DNA of 64,000 nucleotides from NCBI RefSeq assembly GCF_031769215.1, contig NW_026781961.1:1612001-1676000 (forward strand), read 5' to 3'. This DNA comes from Ylistrum balloti. Taxonomy: Eukaryota. The translations under genes and the position numbers were made by a program. Within the stretch, counting starts at the first letter, position 1. Each line of letters opens with the position of its first letter. Below, in pieces: positions 14,490-47,729 of the stretch. Below the pieces are notes generated by a model that saw only the letters and a list, made by a program, of their open reading frames with translations, was not told where the DNA came from and ran no database searches.

Positions 14490-14644
14490 TTATGTCTTGG
14501 AAGGTTGTAAAAATTGATAGAGCTTATCAATATCCATTGCAACGATTAAAACAACTGGAATAGCCAGGATAACTGCTCCCAGTGATCCGATCGCTCGAGT
14601 GGAGGGGCGACTGTCCAAAGCGCATGTCTTCCTCCTGATTGTGG
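14490..14644 (-). CDS. Gene A exon 8 (last): STIRRKTCALDSRPSTRAIGSLGAVILAIPVVLIVAMDIDKLYQFLQPSKT* (juxtamembrane motif + TM + short tail)
   Basis: Strong acceptor ttattttattccag, phase 1, 155 bp. Clear homology to gene B exon 47590..47729. Not in the ORF track. Confidence 0.9.
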
Positions 14645-14849
14645 CTGGAATAAAATAAAATAAAAAAAACGATATTCATGTTGTCGACAATCCTATGAGC
14701 ACATATTTATTTTAATGTATGTATTTCACTGGTATGCTATGGGGGTGTTTTTTTCAAAAGAGATTTAATGGTCGTTGTTTCCTAGGAGGGAACAGGTCGG
14801 ATAAAATGAATTATTGAAAAAAATTTTGTTTGTGCGATATGAAGTTTGA

Positions 14850-15010
14850 CGTGTTTGATGCTCGTTAGTTTGCATGTTGGTTCCATTGTTGTGTACCTTG
14901 TTCTCATTGAGAACGACATTACTTACTAGGATTGTCGTTGATGAAACAGAAGACGCGTACTCCTCCGGAACACGTGGAAAAAACAAGATGTGTTTACGAA
15001 ACACTTTACT
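14850..15010 (+). mobile_element. 3' fragment of a Penelope-like retroelement family (copy in gene A last intron)
   Basis: gatgctcgttagtttgc...tgagaac.acattactt...gatgaaacagaagacgcgtactcctccggaacac is shared with the ~37490, ~41200 and ~47815 copies. Confidence 0.55.
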
Positions 15011-16039
15011 CCAGGTTGAAACAAAATTCCAGAGTAGGCCATTAAAACTGTACACTTATGAAGCAATTTTGTCATACAGTACAATAGTTACCGATTGCTG
15101 GTAAGTCTATTGGTCAAGTTTTTCAAATGTAGGTCAAGGCCACGTGCTTAAAGTTTAGAACTAACAAACGAACGACAGACAGCACTAAAGAATATTACCC
15201 CTATTTTTCAATCTGAGGACATAAAAATACCTAAGTTCACAAAACGTCATTTATTAAGTGACCAAAGGAACAGCTAGAGACGTGATAAGATATAATAACT
15301 TATGGTAACACGTCTTTATCAAATATCCTTATGTAATTTAACCTATAATATGAAGATTGTAACTTAACCATATATGTAAATTTATATACATTTTTTTCTT
15401 AATACCTGGTTTTAAATATGGAAACATGTTTACAAATTCTTCTGAAGCAGCCTTGTTGAAGTGGACACGTTTTCATGATATGTCTGTGTGTGAGTTATTG
15501 TTTAATCTATTTTCAAGTACATGTATAAATTATGTTTGTAGAGGTTACGATTTCTATCAGCACCGTGATTTGCCAAATCGATATTGGAAGAAAAACGATT
15601 TTGGTAACTTTCAAATTTGTTTTCCGTGCCTCATTGAACTACGGGAAATGTCTGCTTAACTTGTGTATATATTTTGTACAATTATTGTCAAGGGACCGTT
15701 CTGTATTAAAAATCCATATATGCTTCTTCTGTAAATGATCATTCATAAATGATATTGAGAATGACCTTGAACGAGTAATGAAAATGATTTTTTAGAAACT
15801 ATTTTCGCAATTTTAAACTTTACAAGTTTGCAACTCATATGTATTTAATTGTTAATGATGATAATGAGAACAAATATGCTTTCTTGGTAATTAAGTACAG
15901 AACAAATCTTAACCTGATTACGAACCATCTTCATCTGTCACAAAGAATGTGAAGATTTTTACCAAAGCGATTCTATGGTCAATGATTGTGAGCATAATGA
16001 CGCTTACAAGATTGTACAAAAGACACACAAGTGAATAAC

Positions 16040-16230
16040 ATCTTTTCCTAATTTAGAGTTGGATACAGTAGAGCCAAACAATGAATTTGACTGCATTATA
16101 CAGCTGTTTTGGCCTTCTAGGAATCGTCAGTGATGCTAGGTGCCTAACAGTTGAAGCCTAGGAGTCGGTTAAAGAAAATCCAAAGTGATCCAAAGAAAAG
16201 TCAAAATCTAGACAGGGAGGTGCAGCACTC
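16040..16230 (-). mobile_element. Dispersed repeat with a degenerate minimal type I hammerhead ribozyme motif (family HH-1, copy 1)
   Basis: Reverse strand reads gcatca-CTGACGA-ttcc-tagaa-ggcc-AAAA-cagctg-TA-taatgc (16093-16136). Flanks are homologous to 59720..59885 and 63540..63660. Confidence 0.65.
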
Positions 16231-16641
16231 TCATAATGAAATAAGTTCCGTAATTTTCATACGTCAGATAATTTTAGAATAACGTCATATACATGTGTAT
16301 TTTCTGAACAGTGCCAATATTCGAACGAATTTAAACGTGGCGAGCAAGTTACAGCAAAAATAGGAGACCACCAGCAGTGTCTGCCACCTGCTATCTTAAA
16401 GAATGTACAAAGCCACACAAACTAATATAGCACCTTTTCATAACTCGGAGTGAGATACAGTAGAGCCAAACAATATTTACGCTTTTAACGTTGAAGGACT
16501 GAAGAAAATTATTTCCCGTGTTGAAATATCAATGAATAGTTTAAACAATCTGGTCATAATGTTAATTGTTTTTGTATACATCTGCAAATGAACATTCACT
16601 ATATTATATAGAAGATTATATACATGAGCACATATACTTAC

Positions 16642-16770
16642 ATGAAAGTGTCATTTTGTTTAACAATAGTTCTGCTCTCAGCTGTCTGATGATGGCCTCT
16701 AATTGAGTGTTGGTCATATTGGTAATCGGATGCCATGTATTACAGCGACAGCAACGGGATACGACTTGAG
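16642..16770 (-). CDS. Gene A exon 7: QVVSRCCRCNTWHPITNMTNTQLEAIIRQLRAELLLNKMTLS
   Basis: cag acceptor and T|gtaagt donor; 129 bp, phase 1-1. Same length as, and homologous to, gene B 45613..45741. Confidence 0.9.
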
Positions 16771-17308
16771 CTGTCAAGTAAAAAAGTGAAAACTGCTCAG
16801 CAAGCAAATAACGTCATTCCAACATTTCATTCGCAAAGTTAGAATTTAAGTATAATGAACACAATTAACATCATTCTAAGGCTGTTGTTCTTTTTCAATA
16901 AATCAAAGTTTATATTCCAATTTTTCAAAAATCTGTGTATCTCATATCATTTAAATGCAATATGGCTCCATTATTTTGTGGTAGCTAATGGTGAAGTTTA
17001 TCATTATTCCATGTAATGTAACACACATCTATGTTAAAAGTAGGTTGTTTTATTTTCTCTACGTTTCATTTTTATTAGAAATGAAGACGTTACTCGTTAA
17101 TAAAAGCTATAAATACAAAAATCAAGAAAGGATACAATAGAGAACATGTACTTGTTACGAATGTATTGTAGTGACAAGGGTGACAACTCCGAAAACTGAA
17201 CATTGGTAAATATTTGACCAATTTCTTTCATCACTCATTGGAATGATAATGACATTTTCGAAAACGTACTGAATGTGTTCCAGATATCTGCGGCCCCTAA
17301 AATATATA

Positions 17309-18230
17309 CAGTTGATACTCGTTGTCTCGAAATCGCTTAAGTCTAAATTCCGTTTGAGTCGAAACAATTTTTAATTCCCGATTTTTCCCCTTCTATCCTT
17401 TCCTTCTTTGTAATTTGAGTTCGGATGAGTCGAAGCGATTTTTCAGTCCCTTTAATTGGAAAGCAAGGGAAATGTCATTCGTTGTCTCTAAATTAACTTT
17501 TGTTAAAACAACGGCATGTCTTCTGACAAAATCGGCCAATACATATACACAAAGTAGAAAGTCACCTGTGCGAAACACTTGTCTAATTACGGCGTATCGG
17601 TGATCCGTCGTACGCACAACATTTGGTCTCTTGCGATTAATTACCAGTTAGATTATCCAATTATAGTCTGGCTTCTAAATTAGTGTCACTGTCCTGTAGC
17701 TTACCTGTACGTTAAAATAGTAGCTCATTTACACGAAACATGAAAACATTTTGCTTGCCAGTGAAGTGTTGGCAGTATTTTTCATTGATAGAGTCTATGT
17801 CTGTGCGTGATTTGTTAAGTCTAGCGCTTGTACAATGGTACAATGAAAACTTTCTAGCGCCGTGTTTTTCATATGCTTATATATTCGTAATAACGTCATA
17901 ATGATATGATCTGTAGCTTTATACATTGTTTCTTGTAGTGTATCAATAGCAAATTTTAATTTCGTTTTATTGTCATTCCGTAATATATGATGAATATGTG
18001 TTTCAGTGTTCAGTAAGGGTTTTGTACACGTGTGCCATTTCCTGCCATTTCAAAAATCAGATTAAACTACACTGCTTGCGTGCTATCGTAGCCTTACCTC
18101 TCTCCGCTGTAATCAACGTAAGGAAACGGATATCGTCAACCTTATTTATACACTTTGTTTGAGTCGAAATTCGGATAAGTCGAAATATTTTTCACCCTCC
18201 GTTGAGTTTCGAGATAACGAGTTTTGACTG
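17309..18230. mobile_element. Tc1/mariner (pogo/Tigger-like) MITE, ~920 bp
   Basis: TIRs cagttgatactcgttgtctcgaa / ttcgagataacgagttttgactg flanked by TA on both sides (17307-8, 18231-2); no coding capacity. Confidence 0.8.
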
Positions 18231-18606
18231 TATATTAAAAACACACATACACAATAAAAAGATGTGTAGTTTTCCTTTCTCTCGAATTCAAACTTTTGTG
18301 TCAGGTCCTGGTGCAATGGAGTTAAAAAAGAATTAACTAAATTGCATCATGTATAGGTTCTTCTGAGGTTTGTAAATAATGTATGGCCATAAAGAGGTAA
18401 AACCGTGGAGTAATCTACTGATGCTCTGTCGTTTTCTTGTGAAAACGAATTTCTGATTAGTGAAGTTAAAATATATTTCAGTTAGATGTAAAATAATACC
18501 AGAACCGGCTCTTGTCAAAATATATTTTTAACGGGTAAATATTTGGGAATCTGAATATAAATGCTTGGCGACTTACGTCAGCGATGAGATGAGATGATAA
18601 ACTTAC

Positions 18607-19074
18607 TATAGTTGTTTTCCGTCGTTGTTGCATGGATTTCAGTTACTGGAGGTGTCTCAGCAACAGCAGTGGTAGTGCTAGTGGTCATAACGGTAGAAGA
18701 GGTGATAGTGGTGCTGCTCACGGTTGTAGCAGTAGTGACAGCGCCATCTGTGGGAGCAGTAGGGATGGTGGTAGTGACAGCGCCATCTGTGGGAGTAGTA
18801 CGGATGGTGGTAGTGACAGCGCCATCTGTGGGAGCAGTAGGGATGGTGGTAGTGAGAGCGCCATCTGTGGTAGCAGTAGGGATGGTGGTAGTGACAGCGC
18901 CATCGGTGGGAGTAGTAGGGATGGTGGTAGTGACAGTGCCATCTGTGGGAGTAGTAGGGATGGTGGTGGTGACGGCGCCATTTGCCGGAGTTGTGGTGGC
19001 ATCGGGACTGGTTGTGGCGATAACGTTGGTCGTAGTACCCAAGTCGATTGGATCTCCACAATTTAGCATCGTTC
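18607..19074 (-). CDS. Gene A exon 6: Thr-rich mucin-like stalk with 13-aa repeats (PTDGAVTTTIPTA)
   Basis: aag acceptor and A|gtaagt donor; 468 bp, phase 1-1; lies within ORF 18578..19198. Confidence 0.88.
18732..18985. repeat. Coding minisatellite, 39-bp unit, ~6.5 copies
   Basis: Unit gtagtgacagcgccatctgtgggagcagtagggatggtg starts at 18732, 18771, 18810 and so on. Confidence 0.95.
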
Positions 19075-19508
19075 CTTTAAAAAGACATGGTTTGTATTGA
19101 TAGTTATCAAATAATGTTTCAATAAGTGATAACCTACATTTCAAACAAACACCTAACACGGCATATAGAATGTCACAGAGAGGCTGCATTAGTTCCAAAT
19201 GAGTGTAGAACTGATTTTCATAATTTCAACGAAATGTAAGTAAGACATAATTAACAGAAGTTTCTATACCGAAGAAATGAATACAAATTTAAATAAGGAA
19301 TGGACGACTCAAAAAGTTTAAAGGGAAAATATGAAATTGATCTATGACTTTATCAAAAATTCAAGAATACATGAGTTATATTGAGATGAGATGAAATCGG
19401 AGAGAAGCCCAGATTTGAGTGACCTCGAAAGTAGTTCGAAATGAATTTTCAGAAATTCAACTATGTGTCCACCATCAGTAAATAGTTATATACATTCTGA
19501 CTCCTTAC

Positions 19509-19602
19509 CATTACTCTCTAAATTTGAGGTTATGCTACCAGTCTTAAAACTCTTACACAGGAAGGTAAACCACCTACAAGTCTTTATCTGATCGAAGACG
19601 AG
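19509..19602 (-). CDS. Gene A exon 5: LVFDQIKTCRWFTFLCKSFKTGSITSNLESN (end of PLAT-like domain 2)
   Basis: cgtttcag acceptor and G|gtaagg donor; 94 bp, phase 0-1. Homologous to gene B 43555..43649. Confidence 0.85.
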
Positions 19603-21230
19603 CTGAAACGAAAAGTTTACATGTTAGGAACCGAATAATGCAAATCAATATTTTCTTTTTTGAATTAATTTTCCTCTTGTTATGATATAAATTTATGTTA
19701 TCGTTTCTTAGATAGGAAAGGAATACTTGCATATTACGGAAACAATCAAACAAAAAAAATCACAAACTATTATAAGGCTAGTATCAGAGCCGTGCATATA
19801 CATTGGTCGAAATATCCTTGTCATGTATATAAATATATATATATATATAAACACAAACACAGAGCTGATTGAAATTATTCTATGTGCAAGTCCACCTAGG
19901 TGAATTACAAGCCGCAATGAATAGGTCTACTCAAGATTGATATTCCCTGTGTTCACCTCAGAAATAAATGGTTGTTATTTGACAAGAATTTATGTAGTTT
20001 ACTGACGAACCATCCACGTCTTCCTAGAATTCAATACCTTTTCCACTTGTTATGAACAGAAGATATTTCGTATATCTTTACCGTTTTGAATAACAACGAA
20101 TGAATTATACGCCTTCAAACTATAAAGCTTAGGACAGATGACAAAACAAAATTCGCATGTACAAAAATAACGTACAAATCTTCTAATGTACAGCGGTAAT
20201 TACTCATAAATGTACACAGAATTATGAGATATCACCCGATCTACAGTCGAACTTCGTTAATTCGACCTCGCAAAGCTTGAATATCACATTTAACTGGAAG
20301 CACTTTGTCAGTTGCGGTAAAATCATCTCTTTACCTTTGTAGTAATGGAAAACACAAATTCAGAAAGCTCGAAAAACTATAACAACTTGGTCACAGAAAA
20401 GTGAAATTTATTTTATTTGGATTGCGGGTGTCGTCGATAAAGAAGTTGAAGTTTACTCTTCCGGATAACATGGTACTATTATCCTTATATGTTTTAATTC
20501 TGTCTTTTGTTCAAAGTTTGTCTATTTTCATCGATTTTGAGTAACAAAGAACTTTACCATTGGCTGTAAATGAAGCTTCTTCAACGGCTAAAAAACTTTT
20601 GAAATTTTGACATCAAAGTAAGTTTACATCTAACTTTTCGCGAACACATTGTATCATATAATCGCAGTTAATTAAATACCGTGAATCACTTTTGATCGAT
20701 ATAATGATATATTTTAATGGTAAGGGCATCTGTGGTATGTTTTAGTTTATTGTCAGTCTCTATTCAGGATACAGTATTCAATATTCACATGATGTGATCT
20801 TTATGCTTTTATTTTATAATGGAGATTTGTATTTTTTTTTTTTTTTTCAATTTTCTTTCTTTCTCTCTTTTTATTCATATTCATTTATTTGTGTTAAATG
20901 TTTATGTTTCAAGTCTTTGTATAGGAAAAAAGAATGTTTTCTGTGTCATGTATCTTGAATTTTGTAGAAGTAAAACACAAGAGGAAGAAAGTTAGTTTAA
21001 ATTTGCTTGCATTTTTTGTTGGGAAACTATTCTGTATTATACTGTATTTCCGTGGCAAACAGATCCTTAACGTAAGGTATTCTTTGAGCAAAGTAAACAA
21101 ACCTGATGCAATATCCTAACCATGTTAGTGAAAATGGATAAGGGTACAAAAACATTTTATCAATATAAAAAAGATAGCAGCTTGTTAAATTATGGTATGC
21201 TTTATTTACACAAACTTTAATCAGATTTAC

Positions 21231-21457
21231 CTTTTCACAGTCCCATAAATCATTACTCAGGGTCTGAAGACTGCATGTGATGGGGTCTTTGATAGGTATT
21301 GTCAAATTTAATGTGACGATGCTATTTAAAGCGAAATGCGTTTTGAACTGTGCTGTTTGACTGACACCCGTACTTTCCCACAAAGTAAGGATACAGCGAA
21401 GGTCAGCTTTTCCATGAAGCCCATTTCCAGTTGTAAAGTGAACTGCCCACATATCCT
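21231..21457 (-). CDS. Gene A exon 4: PLAT/LH2-like domain 2 (DMWAVHFTTGNGLHGKADLRCILTLWESTG...DLWDCEK)
   Basis: gtttcag acceptor and AAG|gtaaat donor; 227 bp, phase 1-0. The W-x-V-x-x-x-TG ... W pattern is PLAT-like. Homologous to gene B 40822..41051. Confidence 0.85.
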
Positions 21458-22382
21458 CTGAAACACAACCAATACTATACAGGTTATTTATTTCAATAGT
21501 TAATTTTGTTGGTTTTACCAAAGCCATGAATGAAAATAGGATGTTTTGTTCACGCAACTGATTTTCGTTGAAATTATTGTTGGATATGGTATTTATCTAC
21601 TTTCCGCGAATTTATTTCTTCGCCTATTAAATACGTTATAAAGAATACTGTAAAAAATGTTTTGTCGAGTACGTCTATATTTCGCGGTTGTCTAAATTCG
21701 CATTTGTCAATCAATTTGTATCAATGTAAATTATATGTTCAAACACGAGTGTTAAGCGTCAGCGCTTTCGTTATTGATCTTTTAGACCTAAACTGATATA
21801 TAGCAACAACAACAAAAGAAGATGAAGACAGAATACGCTTTTAACATGACGTGAAATAAATTTGTAAAAAATCTATACATAAATCTTGATATTAAGACAT
21901 TTTTTACACATACATATAGATATATATTTGTATTTTTCTTAAATGTAGTACATGCTTGGTAAATTGTTGTAGTCGAGCGATGCAGTTATGCGTCAAATAG
22001 ATTATGATATTGAAAAAAAACAACTTATCATTCATCTATATTCAGGACCAAAACTCATTTGTTAACATTTAAAAAGATAATTATAGGTATACATTTGGAT
22101 TTTGAGCTAGCAATAGGAACATAGGGTGATGTAAAGATACAATATAAAACTGAATATTGTATCATATAAGGTTACCATGTCTATCAAGCTCAAATCGTGA
22201 ATCCAAGGTCGAAAGAATGAAAAATTCATGACTGGTTCGTTTTGTAGTAATTGTGTCAAAGACAATGATTGGGAATGTCCTAAATGTATCGCGCACTCAC
22301 CGGGATAATGGTTGTAGTCTTTTACTGTAGCCACGAAGAGTGATTTTATTTATTTATGAATGCGATGTATTCGAGAGCATAC

Positions 22383-22473
22383 CTAATGGAAATATCGTTG
22401 TGGTTTGTTGTCCTATGCCCAGCAAACAATTGCAGTCGAATGTAAAGGTATGTGATGCGCTTTCCATTGTAAG
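22383..22473 (-). CDS. Gene A exon 3: LTMESASHTFTFDCNCLLGIGQQTTTIFPL (end of PLAT-like domain 1)
   Basis: ttttacag acceptor and G|gtatgc donor; 91 bp, phase 0-1. Homologous to gene B 39814..39901 (TFTF-x-CNC). Confidence 0.88.
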
Positions 22474-23433
22474 CTGTAAAAGATCAAAGCCAAACAATAC
22501 AGTTAATTCCTTTATATATTTATCTATTTTAGCGATTCCGTCAATTCCATTCAGTCGGCGCGAACTAATGATGCGAAAGAACGGGAAGGTTAGCAGCCAC
22601 AACAGAAAGACACTCTTCAGAAGTCAATACGTCAATAAATATTGAATTGCCACTAAGTCGTTGTTGAAAATACACAAAAGTTGAGTTCGTTTCATTTCCA
22701 TTAGTTTGAATTTGAGAATGACTTAAATTTTTACCCTCCTGTTAATTTCCTTACTCTATGCGAATTTCAGACCACAAGTCCTCCGAGACATTAAAAACTA
22801 ATTAGCATTTATACGAAAGTATATCGTGTTGCTTCTAATAGCTAAATAACCGAACAAATTACACAGACTCAGTCCAATAGTTTTGAAACGACATTACAAG
22901 CTTTTCCGCAATAAATAATGCAGTATTTATCTTATACTCTGTAGGAACTAGTTATAATATTTCAAACGGAACTAACATGTTAATGTTACCTATTAGACGT
23001 GTTTGTCTAATACAATTTGTTTTTTGAATATGATAAGCACTTTTTAAGTTATATCATTTAAATAACCTTATTCATCATAGATGGTGTTGCTTTTGCGATT
23101 GCAGGTTTATCCAGAAAAAATCTCTATTAATAAAAATACAAAGCAAAATTCGTTTAAAGAAGAAAAACTAAGGGAACTGATTACAAAAAAGGAAAGAGAT
23201 AAGAATATTAAGTTTGTTTCCTGTTAACAGAGATGTAATATTTAACAAAACTGAATATTGATCTGGAAACAAATTTGTTCACCATAGATTTATACCACAG
23301 GAAAAAAAAACATTGTTCAAATATTTTAAGACCGATATGCTGAAATTGAAAAATAGTGATGCTTTATACACGATGAAGATTTAATTAAAAATTCCGTTTT
23401 ATGTTTTACTTTGACCGAGTAAGAAACCCATAC

Positions 23434-23690
23434 CTGAAGCAATGTCCAAGCTAATGCCGGCTCAGTTTCATTAGCCCATACATCAATTTGCACTGGCCTG
23501 GTAATGTCAGGGATACCAACATTTATCGCAGCGAGAGACTCTGTATGGAAGTATGTCCCTATTTCCATGGTAACAATGGGTGCAGGGCTGACACTGGTGG
23601 TATCGCGTTCATAAAACGTAACTGACAAGTCGATATTTGTGGAGAAAATGGTACTGCTATTGGTAGTGAGGGTAATGTTCCATTCATCAG
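23434..23690 (-). CDS. Gene A exon 2: PLAT-like domain 1 (DEWNITLTTNSSTIFSTNIDLSVTFYER...AWTLLQ)
   Basis: ttacag acceptor and CAG|gtatgg donor; 257 bp, identical in length to gene B exon 38287..38543 and clearly homologous to it. Confidence 0.88.
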
Positions 23691-25772: not shown

Positions 25773-25815
25773 CTGCTGTAATATACACTAAAGCCAACAG
25801 TAATCCTAAACCCAT
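25773..25815 (-). CDS. Gene A exon 1: signal peptide MGLGLLLALVYITA
   Basis: ATG at 25815, hydrophobic run, G|gtaagt phase-1 donor; acceptor ttgttacag just upstream of 25827. Total gene A CDS 1464 nt = 487 aa without the optional micro-exon. Confidence 0.75.
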
Positions 25816-33728: not shown

Positions 33729-33770
33729 CGTCACTGATGAGTCCTTGCTGGTTGAAACAGGTGTATGATA
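33729..33770 (+). ncRNA. Degenerate minimal type I hammerhead ribozyme motif (family HH-2)
   Basis: cgtca-CTGATGA-gtcc-ttgct-ggtt-GAAA-c-aggt-gTA-tgata. The catalytic boxes are intact, stem I is partly paired, and stem II is weakened (ggac to ggtt). Confidence 0.6.
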
Positions 33771-34099: not shown

Positions 34100-34172
34100 A
34101 TGTACCGCTATTTCTATATTCACCAAACGCTCCTTATGACAGTGCTTTTTGCAATAGGTCATGCCCAAAATG
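34100..34172 (+). CDS. Gene B exon 1: signal peptide MYRYFYIHQTLLMTVLFAIGHAQN
   Basis: Acceptor attacag at 34087, ATG at 34100, G|gtaagt phase-1 donor; hydrophobic core with G-H-A cleavage-like site. Confidence 0.78.
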
Positions 34173-37149: not shown

Positions 37150-37740
37150 GATCAAAATTATCCCGATCGATAAACATGTATACAAACATTTGTCCCTGAA
37201 ATGAGAGCAGTTGTATCAATATTACTTAAGACTAACAACGAAACTTCATGCATGTTGAATTGATATTTATACTTTCGCTTAAGACAAAACATCGTAACAC
37301 CAAGTTGCACTTCATAAGTAATATTTTGAGCCAGCTGCTCTACGTAATTGCGCATGGTTTTCCTTTGTTCTCAAGCAACAAGAATTTACCAATCTTAGCA
37401 ATAAGATATCACGGTCGCCACAGTGACCTCATTAAGAAGTATTCTATTTCGTTATTTGATATGAAGCTAGACATGTTTTATGCACGTTAGTAAGCATTTT
37501 AGTTCTGTTGCTATATATCTTGTTTTCATTTGAGAACGTGACATTGCTTACTTGAATTGATCACGATTAATATGGCGGGTTTTGTCGATTAAGCAGAAGT
37601 TGCTAACTTTTCCTTAACACCTGTCCATGTAAATCTTTCTTTTGTTCATATTTTGCTTTAGTTTTATTGAATTTAAGTTTGGATGAATGATTATTTTAGC
37701 ATACTGGTATTTCCTTGTTTTATTAACCATTATTTACTTT
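37150..37740 (+). mobile_element. Penelope-like RT C-terminal fragment plus 3' region
   Basis: The translation RYHGRHSDLIKKYSISLFDMKLDMF matches the recalled KFYGRHHDLV.RY..SVSQM..DMF C-terminus of this RT class. It is followed by the shared tgagaacgtgacattgctt...aagcagaag segment. Confidence 0.6.
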
Positions 37741-38286
37741 TGTTTTTTCAATCACGACATGTTGCCAAACAGTTTATGAACATAATTGACGAAACATGGG
37801 CAAAATATAAATTAAAGTATTTATTTGAATATTCTTAAAATTGCAAAGAAAAATTAAGAAATGATAAGACCACCACTTAAGTAGTTAGGCGTTAAAGGCA
37901 TACTAATAAGCACATCCTAATTTATATTGCATAATGAATACGAATTCCTAACGAGATCATTGTGACAACCTGAAAATTCCTCCACAATTCTTATCATTCT
38001 ACATCTCTCGAAACCAATTGTTGTAAGCTTATATCTGAGTTGTCGGTATTTGGCATGTGACAATAAATAATAGATAAGTATATATTTAGAAAAACACTCT
38101 CCTGCAGAAATAACAAAAAATTTTAAAAAATGATGCTAATATATAGAAGGGGAAGGGCGCACCGTCCCAGCACAGCAAGTACATATGTTTTTTCTAAAGG
38201 AAAAGTTCCTTACATGAAACTTTAATAATTTCATATCAGAAACATTTACATTTATTATCATTATTATTTTGATATTATCATCGCAG

Positions 38287-38543
38287 TTGTTGATTGGGAA
38301 ATTACGGTCATGATATCCGACCATAGCATCTCCAACACCAATCTGAATCTGTCGATGACGTTTTACGAGCGTGGTAAATCAAGCACTAGTCCTTCGCCCA
38401 TTGTGACAATACCGATCAGAGCAAATTTCATTACCGCATCGCAATCTGTGGTCAATGTCAGTATGCCTTATATAACAAGGCCAACGAAAATAGACGTAAC
38501 CGTCGAAGGAATGGAATCCGGGTTTCGACTTAAATTGCTGAAG
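38287..38543 (+). CDS. Gene B exon 2: PLAT-like domain 1 (VDWEITVMISDHSISNTNLNLSMTFYERGKSSTSPSPIVTI...FRLKLLK)
   Basis: catcgcag acceptor and AAG|gtatat donor; 257 bp; paralogue of 23434..23690. Confidence 0.88.
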
Positions 38544-38861
38544 GTATATTGTATTTTGTACATGTTTTTGTGAAATGTCACATTTCTATTGGCACGTGAT
38601 GTATGTAGCAGTACATACATACAAGTCATTAACAGTGCTCTGAATATCTATGGGGATATGTCATTAAAAGAGTTCTAAAAAGGATCCAAATGAGATTGTC
38701 AATGATAAGATAGCACTTTACACAAATTAATCGAAATCAGATGCCAAGGGAGAGAGTTCATTTATCATTCATGACTCTTTGTTATCACAGATCTGGTTAT
38801 ACATATTTATACAATACTTCGATACTAAAGACTGTGTTCATTCGGGCAAGTACAATGTTTT

Positions 38862-38919
<58 letters not shown>
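38862..38919. repeat. (ATC)n microsatellite, ~19 units, intronic
   Basis: Direct read of the sequence. Confidence 0.97.
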
Positions 38920-39813
38920 CAATAAATAATCACAATAATTTTTCAACAGTGTCCCACTTATGATATATACACATATATATGTTTAATCAGCCTAAACCTG
39001 AATTAATCTGACTTACAAAATAACCTTGGCGATATATATGTATGCACCAATTTCCTACTAAAGCGACACCCGGATGTATTTTACTCATCGATGTGTTTTA
39101 CAAGATAAAAAAATTGATTTAAGTCAAATAGACATAAAAATCAACATTAGCTATCCTACTCACAATGTAAAAACAACAACTAAATAAATGTTCAGGTGCC
39201 TATAGATAATAGAAGTAATATAAAAGCAGTTAATGATACTAGGTAATGGTTTATTCAGTGAGGAATTCCTAAGGGTCATGACTAGAAGTACATTTGTAAT
39301 TGAAAACTAGGATAGGGGCTGTTTACTTTTACTGTTAGGTAAGTGCGTGCTTGTAAATTTGTAATGAAATAAACTATTTTTGTATCTTCGAAACAAAAGT
39401 TATGAAGTCTTAACCCCTAAATGAAAGTTCTTCTGGATATAGCAGTAGAAACCTTTTTATGTTTATATATATATAACTACATTTCAAACCATAACAATAT
39501 TTCCTTACACAAAATGACTGTTGCGAATTATGAATATCTTAATTATAATACCATGTCTTCTGTTTTAAACGTACTAGCTCATTGTTTTTATGATTGTTGT
39601 TCTCTTTATTTTATTCATTCTTATATTTGTTCACAGGTCTGTTTGTGGATGTTTATTATTTGTTTACTACGTAATGGCATTTCAGATGACAAAAATCAAC
39701 TATAACCCGAAACATTTTTGTATCTATCTGTAATGATAATCCCATCAAAGATTTAAACCCAGGGTATTATAAATCCAATGCTAACAGAACTTTTGTAATT
39801 TTATCTCTTACAG

Positions 39814-39901
39814 CTGACAATGAAGAGTTCATCCCAAACATTTACTTTCGAATGTAACTGTTCGGTGCGGACGGATATGAATACCACCATATTCCCAATA
39901 G
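39814..39901 (+). CDS. Gene B exon 3: LTMKSSSQTFTFECNCSVRTDMNTTIFPI
   Basis: ctcttacag acceptor and G|gtaaat donor; 88 bp, phase 0-1; paralogue of 22383..22473. Confidence 0.88.
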
Positions 39902-40039
39902 GTAAATTAATTACATTGTGATTGTGTTTATTATTTGGAACATAATATTTGGAAAAGGTGAGACTATAAAATTATTTATCTATTACCCTCTTAATCTGGT
40001 AAATTTTCATTTTGGTCGATAATTATCAGTTGAAATTCT

Positions 40040-40340
40040 TTACTGGTTGATAACTGGTCTTTAACTGGTTGATAACTGGTTTTTTACCGTTTGCTAACTT
40101 GCCTTTTACCGGTTTATAACTTGCCTTTTACCGTTTGCTATCTTGCCTTTTAGTGGTTGATAACTTGCCTTTAACCGGTTGATAAATTGTCTTTTACCGC
40201 TTGATAACTTGTCTTTCACCGGTTGATAACTTGCCTTTTACTGGTTAATAACTTGTATTTCACCGGTTGATAACTTGTCTGTCATCGGTTGATAACTTGC
40301 CTTTTACCGAATGCTAACTGGTCTTTAACCGGTTGCTAAC
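40040..40340. repeat. 22-bp minisatellite (ttaccggttgataacttgcctt), ~13 copies, gene B intron 3
   Basis: Direct read of the sequence; imperfect units. Confidence 0.92.
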
Positions 40341-40821
40341 GTCAGTAATCCTATATACGTTACCTATAATTGGTCTTCGTGTTTACTTTAAAATCATAAC
40401 TTTTCGAGGAGGATTTATTTCAGTTGATTGCGTTGGTACCTTTAATCCACGAATGCATACGTCCACGAACTGTTGAAATAGTATAAAAAAATTATTGAGA
40501 TATATAGATATATTCATCCACGCCATGAAGTTTTGATGAACATGTATAAAAAAAACAAGACACGAAAAACTATTATTTTAATGTTTGTACACTCGTGTTG
40601 TTTAAAACTATTTATTGATCATCATTATTTTTTGTTAAAATTACTTTGGATAAAGCAATGTTATCAATCGTATCTACATCTTTTATCGAAAATTTTAGTT
40701 AGTGGTTTTTCAGTACATTAAGTGTGAGAAAGTCAGCACTATCCAAACCATATATACAGACTTTGGCGAATCATTTCAAAGCAGTTTCCCCTACAATAAG
40801 ACATTGTTTGCCTTGTTTCAG

Positions 40822-41051
40822 AGGACAAGTGGGAGATAGAATCCGAAACTGGATCTGGAATATATTCTGGCTCCCATGGACATTTTGGCATCACGATTTG
40901 GGACAGCGCTGGTTTCAGCCATACAGCAGTTTGCCGTGGCCCCTTTCAAATTAGTCAACGAAAGATTATAAAAATTATATTACCTCTGGACGATCCTTAT
41001 AAGTACACGATGTGGCATGTTGAGAGAATTGATTTTTGGAACTGCACTAAG
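40822..41051 (+). CDS. Gene B exon 4: PLAT-like domain 2 (DKWEIESETGSGIYSGSHGHFGITIWDSAG...DFWNCTK)
   Basis: ttgtttcag acceptor and AAG|gtacgt donor; 230 bp, phase 1-0, open frame. Paralogue of 21231..21457. The ORF track lists a different frame here. Confidence 0.87.
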
Positions 41052-41059
41052 GTACGTAA

Positions 41060-41255
41060 AAAATGAAGATAATACCAACGTGGCAAAATATTCATAATTC
41101 AAACTGAAATTTGATAAAACTAAGGCAAAATATGAACAAAAGAAACATTTTAACGAAGACTCCTGAAAAAGTACAAGGATAATAAGACCATGTGTTCCGG
41201 AAGAGTGCGCGTCTTCTGCTTCATCGACGACACCTGCCATGTAAACCTTGGTCAA
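41060..41255 (-). mobile_element. Same Penelope-like 3' fragment, reverse orientation (gene B intron 4)
   Basis: Reverse strand reads gtcgtcgatgaagcagaagacgcgcactcttccggaacacatggtc. Confidence 0.55.
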
Positions 41256-43554
41256 TCCAAGTAAGTAATATCATGTTCTGAAATAAGAACAGGGTGCAAA
41301 ACAGGGTCCTGTGTCATGAACAAAGACGGTACAGTCTTTAAGTACGGTGTGCTAACCGAATGTGCCGCTAGAGCGGCGCACAATATTTAGTGGCAGCGGT
41401 AAGAATCAAACTTATGCCTCCGAAGATACGTGTCAAGGATTCTTCAATGTTGATATTTTGATGTTGATAATCTGCTGGAATGTTTAATGTGGTCCATTTA
41501 TCACAAATATTACTTGATGATATAAAGCTGAGAAGAAAAGGTGTGTATATTTTGGGACATACCTTTCTCTCGGATCTGTTGAAGTAATTTATTATATTAT
41601 TTATGCGTTAATGGGTATCATTGAGAAATACCAAATTCTCTCACTAGCCATTATGCCATAATCGTTGTTAGGAATGGGCTATATAGTTCATCTGTACACA
41701 TCAGCAATTTCACACAAAAAAAAATAATAATAATAATAAAAATAGAAAAAAAATCCAATTCGGAAAAACAGTTTTCTAGCAATATCAACAAAGGTAGTAT
41801 GTGTGCAACCACAGAAATGATGTCAAACATTCTTAAAGTCATATTAATGAAAAATAGACTTTGAGAAGCTGTTCTTACACGAAAATAATGATGTTTTATG
41901 TGAATACGACTTAATGTTATATACAGTTGATATTAGAGAGGAGTAATTTAGCATTACTTAAAGTCATGCATGATCTTTAAAAGGCAATTCATTATAATAG
42001 ACCAAAGGCAACAGTTTTGGAAGTATTCAAGTAAAAACATTAATGTTTTGCGCTTATCGAAACTGCAGACTTATTTTCAGGATAGGCTTATTTTTGAAGG
42101 ATGCCTGTTGTCGAGTTGTATGGAATTTTGTTAGTGAGTGGAATTATTTGTCAGGTTGGTCCCTAAAAGGAAACTGTAACACATTTCCATCAGCACCGAT
42201 GTCCCTGAACCCTGTCTTTGATAAATTCTATAAATTTTAATTCTGGATTATTTCGAAAGAATATCAAGTTCTTGTATATACATTACAACGTGACATGCAT
42301 TTTACGGTAAACTGCGGGGACCAGCAGTGTCTACCACCTACTATTTACGAAGATTCATATAGGTTAAATTAAAGACCAGATATCAAGGTGCGCCAACCAC
42401 CAACACCAATATGTACTGATCAGTTCAAAGAACACCAGTTCATTTTTTACTCAATTTTAGGACCAAAAATTGAAACATAATAATTGCTTTTTCAAATATC
42501 AATGCTTTAAGGTAGCTATCAACAGCATCAGTTTGCTTTTTTTAAAAAGATTTGACCATATCAGAGCAGAATTTACGCTTGCTTAACGCATGATTGTCAC
42601 CGTGTTCATGTTCTTCTGGAATTGAGCCATACGATATATATGTATACCATATTTTGAAATGTATATTAATCATTAATATATGCATTTCAAACGCTTTCAT
42701 GGGAACTTTTGCCTCTATTTTCTTGTCAATTACAACTTCAAATATTAGATTCCTGACTTTGTTTCAGTTGGTGTTCGTCCAGTTAACAATGATAATCATC
42801 TATGTATATAAACATTGAAAAGGACTGTTACTAATTTATGTGTCGATACCAATCTATGTAAACATTGGAAAAAGCTTGTTAAAATATTAATAAGCATTGC
42901 GTGAAGCACGCTAAGTAGCCTATAAGTAAAATGTACAGTTCAAATATCACTTCCATTTTATGGTAACTCGATCAATATCACTAACGCGTGTTTTGGTTCC
43001 ATTCAGTTGATTTATAAATGGATTTTACATAGCCGTCATAATGAAGAAATAATTTTGTCTTGGAGTATATTGATTTTTGTATAGTTATTCTACTGTATAG
43101 GTGTTATGAAAGCGTTGACTGGAATAGAGATTTTCGATCGACTGCTCTAAACTCATACAAAACGCCGATTTACAATAACAAAGAAGGATGTGTTCACTAA
43201 CCATGTCTTTACCATTATATCTCTCGTTCAGATTACCCGAATCCTCATTTCTTTTTCTTTATAATTAGTTAACGAAGAGATGTTGATGAAATCGATACAA
43301 ACTGTACAGATGTTTTGTCAAAAAACAAACAAACAAACAAGCAAACAAAGCAAATTGTCACTGCCTATTTTTTATTATTATTATTACGAGTACCGTATTG
43401 TATCAATTTAATTACGAAGACAGTATTGGAACAACGTAATTGAATTTTATTTAACAAATGATAATCCCACATGCATCGGAGGTTATCCATATCCCATGTG
43501 CCTGCAATAGTTTGACTCTCTCGGTATGTATTTGAACATGTAATTTTGTTTCAG

Positions 43555-43649
43555 ATGGTGTTCGTCCAAATGACATCGTGTCGGTCATTTAGCTTTGGTT
43601 GTGGGGGGGGTGAAGTTTAATACATTAAGCAGATATCGACAGAATACCG
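43555..43649 (+). CDS. Gene B exon 5: MVFVQMTSCRSFSFGCGG[+1 G]VKFNTLSRYRQNT; apparent frameshift in a G8 run
   Basis: ttttgtttcag acceptor and G|gtaagt donor. It is 95 bp versus 94 bp in gene A. As written it hits TAA at 43618-20; removing one G restores frame and phase. Confidence 0.8.
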
Positions 43650-44081
43650 GTAAGTAAGATCTAAAATGTACAAATATACATGTTGGTAGGTATTACAGAT
43701 GAGTAAGAAGGTCCATACATAATGGAGTTGGTGTGCATTATACCTTCATGACAGTAAACGATTGAAATATTTGTTGAAATTTGAATTCATTCTGTTTGAA
43801 GAGGGCTAGGTAATTGGCAGTTATATGTCTGTATTTAGGTACTTGGTTTAGTTCTGTTGAAATATACATGGAAGTTTTCTTTTTACTATTGTCTAGTTAC
43901 CAAAAGTCATGATTTTCTGACTATCTTGTTATTGAACACGTTATCTCACTTTTTGATATATGCCTATTTCGTTACTTAAAGATATAAAAGTAATTCGAAT
44001 TTAAATGCTTATCGACTTTCTCCTATTTCACGATTGTAATAAGGTAGTACATGATATCACATAACATTATGTATATCTCAG

Positions 44082-44297
44082 GTACAAAGGCAAGTTGTTT
44101 AGCTACCACTTCAACTACCACTACCACTACCACCACCACTACCACCACCATCACTGCCATCACTACCACTACCACCACCGCTGCCACCACCACTACTACT
44201 ACCATCGCGGAATCACCATCAGCTACTAAGGAAGATTCTAATACCCAGACAGAAACCACTGAAGCGCTGACAACCAACGTTTCGACAAACGTAACTG
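44082..44297 (+). CDS. Gene B exon 6: poly-Thr mucin-like stalk (TKASCLATTSTTTTTTTT...TETTEALTTNVSTNVT)
   Basis: ctcag acceptor and G|gtaaga donor; 216 bp, phase 1-1; ACC/ACT triplet-rich. Confidence 0.88.
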
Positions 44298-44389
44298 GTA
44301 AGAAATCTTAATTCGCGATGAAGACTGATTGAGTTGCAATATCTTTACTGACGTACGTTTGTTTGAGAACATCCTCACTTATCAACGCT

Positions 44390-44940
44390 AGGTTTAGAAT
44401 ATCCTCAGTGATGGATTCTTGAATTAGAATATCCTCATTGAACGATGCTTGGTTTAGAATATCCCTAATGAGGGATTCTGGATAAAAACATCCTCAGCGA
44501 GGGATGCTTGGTTTAGAATATCCCTAATGAGGGATTCTGGATAAAAATATCCTCAGCGAGGGATGCTTGGTTTAGAATATCTCTAATGAGGGATTTTGGA
44601 TAAAAATATCCTCAGCGAGGGATGCTTGGTTTAGAATATCCCTAATGAGGGATCCTGGATAAAAATATCCTCAGCGAGGGATGCTTGGTTTAGAATATCC
44701 CTAATAAGGGATTTTGGATAAAGATATCCCAGCGAGGGATGCTGGGTTTAGAATATTCCTACAATTGAGGGATTGTTGGATTAGAATAACCTCAGTTAGA
44801 GATGCTTGGTTTAGAATATTCTTAGTTAGGATTTTTTGGATTAGAATATCCCTAGTTGGTTTAGAATATCCCTAGTTAGGGATTATAGGATTAAAATATC
44901 CTCAGTGAGGGGTGCTTGGTGTAAAATAACCTTAGGAAGG
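44390..44940. repeat. 29/30-bp minisatellite forming a 59-bp dimeric higher-order unit, each subunit with a small palindrome
   Basis: agaatatccctaatgagggattctggataaaaatatcctcagcgagggatgcttggttt starts at 44456, 44515, 44574, 44633 and 44692; degenerate flanks. Confidence 0.93.
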
Positions 44941-45612
44941 GATTCTTGACCAAATAAGTCTTATTTGACGTTTGCTTAGTTCAATACAATTTCAAAACAA
45001 GATATTTGGATGATAATGTCATCATTGATTGAGGTTTGGTATGGAATTTCTTAGAAATAATAGAAGTGTTCAACATAACAAGTTTATGTTTTCTAAGATA
45101 ACAATTGCTCTGGAATACACACAATTGAACGTATTTTGCTGTAAACAGCCTATGTTATTTCTGTTATTTTATGTTCTGTTATGTTAATGCTGGATAACGA
45201 ATGTAGTTTTCAGTATATGCTTGGTTTACATTTAATAGATTTTTAAAGAGGAATGACGGAAACCCTTCCAAAACGTAAGAACCATCTTCGGAAAAACAAT
45301 GGTTTCGCTCTGCGGAGCACATCTCTGTACTCTGAAAGGATGTTTTAACAGCAAAATGATGCCTGTCTTTAAAGGTTCTACATGATAACAAAACCTTTAT
45401 GCATATGGTTATATATGTGTATTGGTTTGTTGTTTTTTTCGATTCCGTTACCATAAGTGTACTATTTGTACGGACCCTTCAATGTTTTTTTTTTTTTTTT
45501 TCTTTTTATGATCCAAAGTTGCAAGACATGTTTGTTGAAAAACTCCTTAATTTCAAAGATATTGAAATATTATGATTAGCTCCTTTTAGATTTGAGTCTT
45601 TCTTTATTTAAG

Positions 45613-45741
45613 CTGCAACCAGTTTGCCTTGCTGCCCATGCAACCTATGGAAGCCGATTGTCAACATGACAAAACTAGAACAACATGCCATTATCAAGAA
45701 GCTACAGACAGAACTAGCCGTTAACAAAACGACACTCACGT
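45613..45741 (+). CDS. Gene B exon 7: ATSLPCCPCNLWKPIVNMTKLEQHAIIKKLQTELAVNKTTLT
   Basis: tttaag acceptor and T|gtacgt donor; 129 bp, phase 1-1; paralogue of 16642..16770. Confidence 0.9.
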
Positions 45742-47589
45742 GTACGTACATCAGAGAATTCATTGACAATCAATTTCATATCTAATTACCAACCTCATCA
45801 CTTCCGGTGATCGTATATTCAGCAAGTTTTATAGATATTTCCTAAGTGTGTAACTAAATAATTGGCTTACAATTAGACGGACAAAATATTTTCTGAAGGT
45901 AACGTCTGATTTTCATTTCTCAGCACCTTATTAACCATATATGTTGCATCAATATTAAATGAGTTCTTTTTTGTGATTTTATCAGGGAATTGTTCAAACA
46001 ATAATCACTAAAAGATCTGATCCTGTCTACATGACACATGTAAAGTACACCTGTATTGAGTCCCTTGTGCAGATTTTGTATTCCGTGAGGAGATTCATTG
46101 CCTGACAGCTCTCTTTGCAAACGCTTCTGAAGAAAAGATCCTATTTTTAAGGATGTATGAAATTCATGTTTGATCGGACGTAGAGCTTAATTCAACATCA
46201 GATGAATTCAAACGTAATGTCATAGAAGTTTTTATGTAAATTATAAATTGTAGTTTTTGCCACGCGTTTTGTAGTGTTTTTGTGATTTTTTTAATCAAAT
46301 GGACAGCATCTGTTCCGTTGTAAGGCTACTTCTTTTGGGTATAACTGAATTTCTCAGCAGAATTCAATAAAATTTTGCACGAGTTATCACCACAAATAAC
46401 AAATTTGAATGACGTGAGTCCTGACTTGGTGGATCACTTTTTTTTAAATTTTACGACCCACATATAAATATGTCTGTTTTTTTTTTTTTTTTTTAATTTT
46501 TGAAAATACATGTTGAATGAAAATTACAAAACATTAAGCACAATGACCCCCTTTTTCTTATTTATTCAAACTTTACATTTTTAGGTGGTGTGGAAATTTA
46601 ATATAAGCATTTTGAGTTTATATTTTGGTTAACATTTCAGTATCAATTTATTATATTTAATGTAAAAAAATTTCCAGGTAAATATCCGTCACGAAAAAGT
46701 ACCGAGAATTTTTGTTATTTATGAAAACGTTAAGAAAATCAGCGAAAATGCTGTAACTCATATTCTAACACCAATTGGAGTGAAAAAAGGAGCTGCTGCG
46801 TCACGTTATTTCCTGTCATTTAACCTTAAAAACAATCATCACCAGAACAAGCGTGGAATTTTGTAAATTTTGGCGTCTAAGTTTGTAAATTTTCACCGTG
46901 TACTTCGTAAATATTTGGGCTCGTTTCGTGATAGGCAAAATAAAGATGATCCTACATCCAAGAAGGTATTCCTAAATGTAAAATAACTAAAATAATTTAA
47001 TTATATATTAAAGAATTATTTAATGACGTCAGACACATTTTAACGTCATCACGGAAAGACATATAGCATTAGAATATCGTCAAATTTGATAACGTATCAA
47101 TCTATTAAAATGTTGTTAAAACGAATGTTCGCAAAAGCATCCAAATCGCGTGATGTGTGATCTTACGTTTCCTTTTCATATTGTGCTCTTCACATTCCGC
47201 ACGAGGTTAGGTTTTCTAAAAGAAATCGAAAGTTAGTTTAAATTAAAAATTCTAAGACTTGTTTTGAACTGAAACTCATGAACGATCCTATAGTTAACTC
47301 GATATTTATCAATGATTAAAGAAAGGGGAATGACACAAGGTTCAGGATTAGATTGACGTTAATTTTGAAAATAATTCCAAAATCACAATGTTTCTAATAA
47401 ATTAAACAAAACGTTCCTATTGCATTAATTTGAATTTGATATCATAAACTGAAGGACGCTCCAGTCGACAAGGTTTAAAAGATGAGAGAGTAATAGGAAT
47501 CTTGGTGAAAATTAGAAATATCGTTATTCAGTATTTCATACATACGAAATTAGATCTAATCTAACATATGCTTTTTATTTTACCTTCAG

Positions 47590-47729
47590 CTTTTAAACGT
47601 AGGAAGATCAGTGTCGATGACAGTCGTCCCTCCTCGAAGGCGATCGGAATGGTAGGAATTATACTCCTTGCTATCCCGGCCCTTTTTCTTGTTGTCATTG
47701 ATTTGACTAGGTTCTGCCAAGTCGTGTAA
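47590..47729 (+). CDS. Gene B exon 8 (last): SFKRRKISVDDSRPSSKAIGMVGIILLAIPALFLVVIDLTRFCQVV*
   Basis: taccttcag acceptor, phase 1; TM helix; stop TAA at 47727-9; paralogue of 14490..14644. Confidence 0.9.

Follow-up and report, generated by a model that had tools for sequence, protein, structure and literature searches.

Predicted stalked surface glycoproteins with a PLAT-type head: a gene family of Ylistrum balloti and Pectinidae

The PLAT/LH2 domain (Pfam code PF01477) is mostly encountered inside the cell, where it targets proteins such as the lipoxygenases, polycystin-1, Rab6IP1, and LOXHD1 to membranes, or else on secreted lipases and toxins. Here we describe two genes, A and B, which lie on a 64,000-nucleotide (nt) stretch of AT-rich (~34% GC), intron-rich DNA from the eukaryote Ylistrum balloti (C104:1612001-1676000; this whole stretch is the window, to which all plain positions below refer). 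Both are predicted to encode single-pass surface glycoproteins with a pair of PLAT-type domains at the N terminus, which places a known fold in a lineage-restricted setting that is as yet undescribed. An earlier note on this DNA, made from the sequence alone, had read the two genes as a head-to-head pair of such proteins; its structural inference holds, but it gave too much weight to the pair, to a conserved juxtamembrane module, and to the head-to-head layout.

Among the described systems, the PLAT domains of lipases and of clostridial alpha-toxin likewise act extracellularly, either on a lipid surface or on a protein partner. In pancreatic and lipoprotein lipases, colipase, lipoprotein, or GPIHBP1 is what the extracellular PLAT domain binds, and alpha-toxin uses its PLAT-like domain to attach to membranes with Ca2+. 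With these versions the first domain of the A/B family would share an eight-stranded sandwich of ~110 residues; in contrast to them, the family has neither a PF01477 match nor a catalytic domain, and its two PLAT-type domains would form the N terminus of a mucin-stalked type I protein. To our knowledge, TFYER and ITRP-x-K-IDVW are not classical PLAT motifs. The N-terminal PLAT domain of the lipoxygenases, which provides the top structural matches, is cytosolic and targets the enzyme to membranes in a Ca2+-dependent manner, whereas A and B combine a predicted signal peptide, N-glycosylation sequons, and Cys pairs with the lack of any enzyme domain. Tandem PLAT domains are seen in LOXHD1, and LOXHD1-fragment clusters of the ESM Atlas match our domain 1 model at a template-modeling score of 0.72. 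However, LOXHD1 strings ~15 PLAT repeats together in the cytosol and lacks a signal peptide, a stalk, and a transmembrane (TM) segment, while A and B would present just two in an extracellular setting, together with all three of these elements.

Polycystin-1 and LOV-1 also combine a PLAT domain with a Ser/Thr-rich mucin-like region. Unlike them, A and B give no Pfam match to the REJ, GPS, or PKD-repeat domains or to the 11-TM channel, are short (487 residues in A) with a single TM segment, and would carry the PLAT domains in an extracellular N-terminal position rather than in the first cytoplasmic loop, as in polycystin-1. Since REJ, GPS, and the 11 TM segments are all missing from the predicted sequences, A and B are not relatives of polycystin or LOV-1, and the LOV-1-like name that NCBI gives to one scallop homolog most likely reflects low-complexity similarity. 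Similar in overall plan are the type I membrane mucins, which display the same signal peptide, Thr/Pro-rich repeat stalk in a single exon with a length that varies among paralogs, single TM segment, and short tail. An SEA or other autoproteolytic module is found in many, though not all, of these mucins. A and B differ from them in lacking an SEA match, in their distal folded PLAT-type domains, and in a membrane-proximal cassette with no Pfam family. In class, the two predicted proteins would be type I membrane mucins whose folded head is unusual and whose anchor cassette has no name.

Predicted architecture of the A and B proteins

Stop-to-stop fragments of the minus strand between 13 and 31.5 kb, when compared by tblastn with the region from 31.5 to 49 kb, returned a colinear series of matches on the plus strand. 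These pair exon 2 (23721-23428 with 38256-38549; 41% over 98 amino acids, E value 8e-21), exon 3 (22506-22375 with 39781-39909; 59%, 1e-10), exon 4 (21464-21225 with 40815-41057; 30%, 4e-11), exon 5 (19608-19555 with 43549-43602; 56%, 1e-3), exon 7 (16795-16631 with 45588-45752; 45%, 2e-14), and exon 8 (14663-14514 with 47571-47720; 44%, 4e-10). Two Thr-rich open reading frames (ORFs), at 18578-19198 on the minus strand and 44051-44311 on the plus strand, fall between the fourth and fifth matched pairs. On reading the flanks, every exon boundary of A and B was found to sit on AG/GT, and a scan for a first exon consisting of an ATG, a hydrophobic stretch, and a phase 1 donor gave one good candidate on each side. 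As the earlier note had stated, this yields two eight-exon genes on opposite strands (A, minus, 25815..14490; B, plus, 34100..47729) with start codons ~8.3 kb (8285 nt) apart, and the exon lengths rederived on the AG/GT sites are identical to those that it gave (Table 1). Gene A has 1464 nt (487 codons) with 0 internal stops, GT-AG introns throughout, and phases 1,0,1,0,1,1,1. The exons were searched singly and were concatenated just for the frame and feature count, dN/dS, and the tree alignment.

The junctions between the signal peptide exon and exon 2, between exons 2 and 3, and between exons 3 and 4, as well as the start of exon 8, fall at the same residues in the RefSeq models of two scallops, where the signal peptide exon likewise ends in phase 1. 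Exon 1 of gene B, with its ATG and donor, aligns to sequence upstream of a paralog, gene D (see below); exon 1 of gene A is a prediction only.

To obtain a fold for domain 1 (exons 2 and 3), residues 18-127 of a homolog from the scallop Argopecten irradians (XP_069108765, our P0004) were modeled with AlphaFold2 (AF2) on a 12-row alignment that included the exon 2 and 3 translations of A, B, and two further paralogs, C and D. The model has eight strands, with a mean predicted local distance difference test score (pLDDT) of 76.4 and a predicted template-modeling score (pTM) of 0.71. When it was compared by VIA-align with 48,161 PDB representatives, the ten best matches were all PLAT/LH2 domains, with Z scores from 10.2 to 5.3, and the next, unrelated, chain scored 4.5. 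These ten are 15-lipoxygenase (1lox, residues 2-114; 10.2), Rab6IP1, pancreatic lipase-related protein 2 (PLRP2), and lipoprotein lipase (LPL) (each 9.5), 5-lipoxygenase (3o8y) and Arabidopsis LOX1 (each 9.1), two entries of coral 8R-lipoxygenase (8.8 for 3dy5, and 8.5), clostridial alpha-toxin (7.3), and polycystin-1 (5.3); the alignments with 1lox, 3o8y, and 3dy5 each span ~100 residues at a root mean square deviation of 2.7-3.1. The top 50 matches from Foldseek are all lipoxygenases, lipases, or Rab6IP1, and the shape search of the ESM Atlas returned PF01477 clusters in 9 of 9 rows (template-modeling scores of 0.69-0.77). The Atlas's independent ESMFold model of the same scallop protein also leads to PLAT, and language-model features place it with PF01477 clusters at 0.88 and 0.86 (185 and 174 features in common). 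Because the PDB, Foldseek, Atlas, and ESMFold comparisons all give PLAT, domain 1 is taken to be a PLAT-type beta-sandwich that has diverged too far to be recognized by Pfam.

Homology of domain 2 (exons 4 and 5) to domain 1 is supported at the sequence level by a profile comparison of exon 4 with exon 2 (hhalign probability 84.7%, E value 6.7e-6, 64 colinear columns). Both domains consist of a long and a short exon with phases 1-0-1, and exon 4 carries, by eye, the PLAT-like motifs W-x-I..TG..G and W-x-C. Given this homology and the same exon phases, domain 2 is probably a PLAT domain too. Of the two PLAT-like domains that the earlier note had proposed, the first is thus supported by its structural matches, and the second is tied to the first by sequence homology.

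The stalk is encoded by a single phase 1-1 exon in each gene, and the two versions cannot be aligned with each other. That of gene A has 155 residues (40% Thr, 10% Pro) and includes a 39-nt (13-residue) unit repeated 6.4 times at 18732-18981, while that of gene B has 71 residues, mostly poly-Thr, with an ACC/ACT hexamer repeat at 44103-44204. Beyond the stalk, the product of exons 7 and 8 comprises, from N to C terminus, a CC-x-C cluster and a sequon; a helix (by eye, with a 3-4-3-4 hydrophobic spacing over about three heptads); the basic RRK or KRRK; the motif D-S-R-P-S..IG..G; and a ~19-residue hydrophobic stretch followed by a conserved Asp and a tail of 10-15 residues. A single strongly hydrophobic segment, at residues ~455-473 of 487, is seen in gene A, whose best hydropathy window is C-terminal. 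Further features of an extracellular type are 7 N-x-S/T sequons and conserved Cys pairs. With a hydrophobic exon 1, a Thr/Pro repeat stalk, and a single C-terminal TM segment, the predicted proteins have the hallmarks of a type I membrane mucin, and the signal peptide, mucin stalk, and TM segment of the earlier note are all borne out as sequence predictions. From these features we infer that the proteins carry a signal for secretion, are N- and O-glycosylated, form disulfides outside the cell, and cross the membrane once in type I orientation with almost no tail.

The TM-proximal part of the anchor has a much wider distribution than the rest of the protein. Exon 8 of gene A gave at least 92 matches in the whole genome, some of which may be repeat debris (a minisatellite derived from the anchor exon is present near gene D). 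At all six of the loci that were read, a long Thr/Ser/Pro stalk is followed by a Cys cluster, a helix, RKKTSA.D.R.SA, a TM segment, and a tail. The consensus of this cassette, a helix ending in K-x-x-L-S, then R-K-K or R-R-K, D-x-R-x-S, x-x-G-x-x-G, TM segment, and D, is present in the A/B family; it is encoded sometimes by phase 1-1 exons and sometimes by an exon fused to that of the stalk. Several cassette loci have long, strongly basic tails, and because of these a type I topology is supported. A glycosylphosphatidylinositol anchor in place of the TM segment was ruled out by the charged tails of 10-16 residues and by the long basic tails elsewhere. No Pfam family matches the cassette, nor did Pfam find an SEA or GPS autoproteolysis domain in the exons, the scallop proteins, or the cassette. 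A word search with the anchor (P0005, residues 425-483) in 5.8e9 public sequences returned the query itself only, the module being too short for a collection of such size. The TM-proximal half of the conserved juxtamembrane module seen by the earlier note is a generic anchor cassette of this genome and no feature of the family; exon 7 taken alone is more family specific (4 strong and 3 weak genome matches). As a separate observation, the minisatellite downstream of gene D (C422:126555-127108, ~75-nt units) repeats, in one frame, the ..DDNR..SKAIG.. of the anchor exon.

Taking the above together, we propose that A and B are old members of a fast-evolving bivalve family of stalked type I glycoproteins with a PLAT-pair head, a reading to which, as a whole, we assign a probability of roughly 0.6; the stalked surface glycoprotein architecture by itself we consider very likely. 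In such a protein, a cleavable signal peptide would be followed by two tandem PLAT/LH2-type sandwiches, an O-glycosylated stalk, and the anchor with one TM segment and a short tail. Exon shuffling may have linked the PLAT pair to a stalk-and-anchor cassette that is generic in bivalves, an origin suggested by the recurrence of that cassette across the genome. Mucin domains extend by ~0.25 nm per residue, and the stalk might hold the PLAT pair roughly 15-40 nm off the cell surface; next to the membrane, the Cys cluster and helix would probably form disulfide-linked oligomers. The head is the presumptive binding part, which by analogy with the lipases and alpha-toxin could dock either onto a lipid or membrane surface or onto a partner protein; specific binding of lipid or membrane by the PLAT pair is a tentative and somewhat doubtful suggestion. 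With no signaling tail, such a protein might act by adhesion, by capture, or as a coreceptor, possibly with shedding at the basic site. Fast divergence, a variable stalk, and copy turnover would fit an exposed interface, such as mucosal defense or gamete or larval contact; the ligand and any role in immunity, mucus, or gamete contact are conjectural. A bolder extension, which we regard as quite unlikely, is that these are lineage-specific bivalve receptors for the lipid or membrane surfaces of microbes, lipoprotein particles, or gametes, evolving fast for that reason, and that all bearers of the anchor constitute an unnamed membrane-mucin superfamily with a common mechanism of oligomerization or shedding.

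The family in this genome and in scallops

A six-frame search of the whole assembly (648.5 Mb, 1372 contigs) with exon 2 of gene A recovered four copies, namely, A, B, gene C (contig C282), and gene D (contig C422), with exons 2, 3, 4, 5, 7, and 8 ordered on one strand at both of the latter loci. A and B, which the earlier note had treated as a pair, are therefore two of at least four loci that make up the family here. Gene D is nearest to B (67% identity overall and 93% in exon 3; synonymous divergence [dS] of 0.38 and dN/dS [omega] of 0.48). A, C, and the B/D lineage are roughly equidistant, at 41-44% identity and a saturated dS of 1.7-2.9; for A against B, the identity outside the stalk is 41%, with dS at ~2.1 (saturated) and omega at ~0.23. 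Because of the saturated dS values and an omega of ~0.2, which among such distant copies is only indicative, an ancient duplication and constraint on the copies appear reasonable, in line with both having been posited in the earlier note.

A profile of the four exon 2 translations (85 columns), when run against 1.84 billion protein representatives, gave 4 hits at an E value of ≤0.001, of which 1 is a spurious repeat protein and the 3 true ones are all from scallops: XP_021350927 of Mizuhopecten yessoensis, automatically named "location of vulva defective 1-like"; XP_069107252 of A. irradians, named "probable maltase-glucoamylase 2"; and XP_069108765, also of A. irradians, "uncharacterized." A word search added one further M. 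yessoensis model. Pfam found none of the domains that these automatic names imply; XP_069107252 is a chimeric model fused to an S-adenosylmethionine-dependent carboxyl methyltransferase (Pfam Methyltransf_7). With Pfam blank and the only true hits misnamed scallop models, the proteins match no named family, as had been supposed. Within the reach of these searches it is restricted to this species and Pectinidae, though faster-evolving relatives elsewhere may escape an 85-column profile.

When the window exons were mapped onto the scallop loci, the same exon order was seen. In A. irradians (CM084279.1, ~13.09-13.18 Mb) three full copies and one exon 2 fragment lie within ~85 kb, and the RefSeq models break one gene into two (203 and 159 amino acids). 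In M. yessoensis (NEDP02002292.1) the block of exons 2-6 has been tandemly duplicated, giving a four-domain model with the layout PLAT-PLAT-stalk-PLAT-PLAT-stalk-TM; the shared phase 1 at the end of exon 6 and the start of exon 2 permits such a duplication within the gene. A tree from the concatenated alignment resolved only B with D and the two A. irradians copies, and the pairing of A or B with particular scallop copies could not be resolved from it.

An enzyme-free PLAT pair atop a glycosylated surface stalk would extend the known uses of the fold and would make the family a tractable candidate in the recognition of lipids or membranes on the mucosal surfaces of bivalves. The exon models should also be of use in annotation, for a family that is invisible to Pfam and is misnamed or split in scallop RefSeq. 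For the genomics of mollusks, the reuse of the anchor in at least 92 places, which may reflect a large exon-shuffled family of surface mucins, may matter more. The finding does not bear on any long-standing open question.

Alternative readings of the locus

Several observations weigh against the architecture proposed above. At the sequence level, PF01477 finds nothing at an E value of ≤10, whether in the exon translations or in the scallop proteins P0001, P0002, P0004, and P0005, and profile searches of PDB sequences, started from the alignment of either domain, returned noise only (E values of ~0.5-1). The domain 1 model is that of a scallop homolog, on a shallow alignment, and not of the joined domain of the window itself. 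For domain 2, exons 3 and 5 share an FTFxC strand with a weak profile match (23%), and exon 4 of gene A, folded alone (pLDDT 78.5), is truncated and yields generic beta-sandwich matches. Another oddity is the position of the basic cluster, on the side of the TM segment that is presumed to face outward. Gene B, as written in the assembly, departs from the phases of gene A (1,0,1,0,2,2,2) and has 10 stops downstream, and exon 4 of paralog D has a frame break beside A-runs in this assembly (C422:131879-132105). Among sequencing runs, a search for the stretch matched five of DNA type and no RNA run, because of which expression, exon 1 of gene A, and most junctions stand as predictions. Literature searches on the scallop accessions, on "location of vulva defective" with scallop, and on extracellular PLAT domains in bivalves gave nothing relevant. 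Apart from these, the sub-threshold Pfam matches to PIN7 and RRF, which fall in low-complexity sequence, were set aside.

The proteins could be mainly shed or secreted components of mucus, cleaved at RRK/KRRK, with the PLAT pair acting in the mucus layer. Many membrane mucins are shed, and the basic cluster is found 12-15 residues ahead of the TM segment in all members of the family and in the generic cassette, alongside a mucin-like stalk and a very short tail without a recognizable signaling motif. Yet RRK and RKK differ from the furin-type consensus R-x-K/R-R, and neither of the autoproteolytic domains sought by Pfam was found, so we deem this unlikely as the principal mode; it is in any case compatible with, rather than opposed to, the surface glycoprotein reading preferred here.

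That one or both genes are decaying pseudogenes, with the break in exon 5 of gene B a real one and the pair a remnant, would account for the altered phases and downstream stops of B and for the missing RNA run. It would also agree with the exon 4 break in D, a TAA at codon 9 of D in the frame of the B-type start (C422:137825-137884), the fairly high omega between B and D, and the fact that four of the six exonic differences listed between B haplotypes change a residue (none makes a stop). Against it, the break traces to a run of eight G residues inside exon 5. Logan contigs from four DNA runs (two studies), aligned to 38250-44249, resemble one haplotype that is ~1% different from the window, and in all four, at full depth, one letter at 43603 is absent, which gives a 94-nt exon 5 and restores the frame. 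Paralog D also has 94 nt at exon 5, with the downstream residues SRYRQNT in the same frame, and the frame is likewise kept here in the scallop copies. Both breaks, in B and in D, occur in homopolymer runs, where assemblies typically err; the remaining exons of B are open with intact GT-AG sites, omega is below 1, and D has a usable downstream ATG that gives a 43-nt exon 1 as in gene A. Since the letter is missing from all four of the other runs, the gene B break reflects either a homopolymer slip of the assembly or a private allele; B is intact in the other samples. The identical phases that the earlier note had ascribed to the two genes hold for A as given, and for B not as the assembly is written. 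We consider decay highly unlikely. Another candidate form of gene B exon 5, of 55 nt with a donor G/GTGAAG inside the G run that keeps phase 1, was dropped, the other samples having G7 and SRYRQNT in frame with D.

The diverging arrangement of A and B from one spacer might instead mark a functional, co-regulated pair with a shared bidirectional control region that is conserved across species. In A. irradians, too, a copy on the minus strand (X2) faces the plus-strand gene of XP_069108765 head-to-head at a distance of ~10 kb. That arrangement is however recent, because X2 is a near-identical inverted copy of its neighbor X1 (plus strand), with which it lies tail-to-tail. C and D have no partner gene on their contigs, the M. 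yessoensis copies are in tandem, and the tree gives no orthology of A with X2 or of B with the XP_069108765 gene. The spacer itself puts the start codons 8.3 kb apart, has no family exons by tblastn, and contains 61-nt tandem repeats (30001-30386) and, at 31943-32575 on the minus strand, three adjacent frame-shifted ORF pieces; by eye, these look like the N terminus and the initial DDE stretch of a transposase of the PIF/Harbinger (HARBI1-like) type. No Pfam match backs this likeness, and the pieces probably represent a decayed element. We see the locus as a dynamic local cluster, not a conserved divergent unit; local duplication and inversion most likely produced its head-to-head layout incidentally, conservation of that layout, a check set by the earlier note, is not observed in the two scallops, and co-regulation of this kind is very improbable.

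Lastly, that the N-terminal domains belong to some other beta-sandwich (Ig/FN3-like, a carbohydrate-binding module, or C2), as might be argued from the lack of a PLAT signal in sequence, the shallow alignment, and the matches of the truncated exon 4 model to GH2 sandwich, cytokine-receptor, and transglutaminase domains (Z scores of 6-6.7), is scarcely credible in view of the uniformly PLAT-type results for the complete domain 1 from the PDB, Foldseek, Atlas, and ESMFold comparisons and the language-model features, a truncated domain being expected to look generic. A language-model search with exon 4 of gene A alone returned noise.

Coordinates and repeats of the window

The exons of the two genes and the features tied to them are collected in Table 1.

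Table 1. Positions of the predicted exons of genes A and B and of associated features in the window
Feature	Position	Strand	Content	Basis
Gene A exon 1, 43 nt	25773..25815	-	ATG and short hydrophobic signal peptide; donor CAG/GTAAGT, phase 1	Prediction only
Gene A exon 2, 257 nt	23434..23690	-	Main part of domain 1; motifs W-x-I, TFYER, ITRP-x-x-IDVW	tblastn; fold of homolog
Gene A exon 3, 91 nt	22383..22473	-	Final strands of domain 1 (LTMxSxS..FTFxCxC)	tblastn
Gene A exon 4, 227 nt	21231..21457	-	Main part of domain 2 (W-x-V..TG..G, W-D-C)	tblastn, hhalign
Gene A exon 5, 94 nt	19509..19602	-	End of domain 2 (VFxQ..CRxFTFxC)	
Gene A exon 6, 468 nt	18607..19074	-	Thr/Pro-rich stalk, phase 1-1	
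Gene A exon 7, 129 nt	16642..16770	-	CC-x-C cluster, N-glycosylation sequon, heptad-like helix; phase 1-1	
Gene A exon 8, 155 nt with stop	14490..14644	-	RRK..D-S-R-P-S..IG, TM segment, tail of ~14 residues	
Spacer between start codons, 8.3 kb	25816..34099			
Gene B exon 1, 73 nt	34100..34172	+	ATG and signal peptide; donor ATG/GTAAGT, phase 1; second in-frame ATG at 34136	Kept in paralog D
Gene B exon 2, 257 nt	38287..38543	+	Main part of domain 1	
Gene B exon 3, 88 nt	39814..39901	+	End of domain 1	
Gene B exon 4, 230 nt	40822..41051	+	Main part of domain 2	
Gene B exon 5, 95 nt here, 94 nt in four other DNA samples	43555..43649	+	End of domain 2	
G8 homopolymer in gene B exon 5	43603..43610	+	Shifts the reading frame of gene B in this assembly	
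Gene B exon 6, 216 nt	44082..44297	+	Poly-Thr stalk, phase 1-1	
Gene B exon 7, 129 nt	45613..45741	+	CC-x-C cluster and helix	
Gene B exon 8, 140 nt with stop	47590..47729	+	KRRK..DDSRPSSKAIG, TM segment, tail of ~10 residues	

The introns of gene B are rich in repeats. Intron 2 contains an (ATC)19 microsatellite (38862-38919), which reads as poly-His in one frame and at which the Logan contigs break; intron 3 has a 22-nt repeat in 13.7 copies (40039-40340), of which 46 nt are skipped in all four of the other samples, making it length polymorphic; and intron 6 has a 59-nt tandem repeat with a 30-nt subunit in ~9.6 copies (44387-44948). Intron 4 overlaps a high-copy dispersed repeat (41050-41450), with a contig word depth of 1e4-1e5 against ~30 and many loose ends. 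Related high-copy pieces are found in intron 4 of gene A (20415-20500) and just outside the last exons of both genes (47900-47987 and 14930-14980).

Outside the two genes, 11014-11751 is occupied by a tandem array of ~730 nt with the 17-nt unit ACCACCTGTCTATAACT and additional periods of 34, 51, 68, and 119 nt; it is because of this array that the GC skew dips to -0.29 at 10-12 kb. A 293-amino-acid open frame rich in Asp, Glu, and Ser at 3977-4858 on the plus strand is unrelated to A and B.

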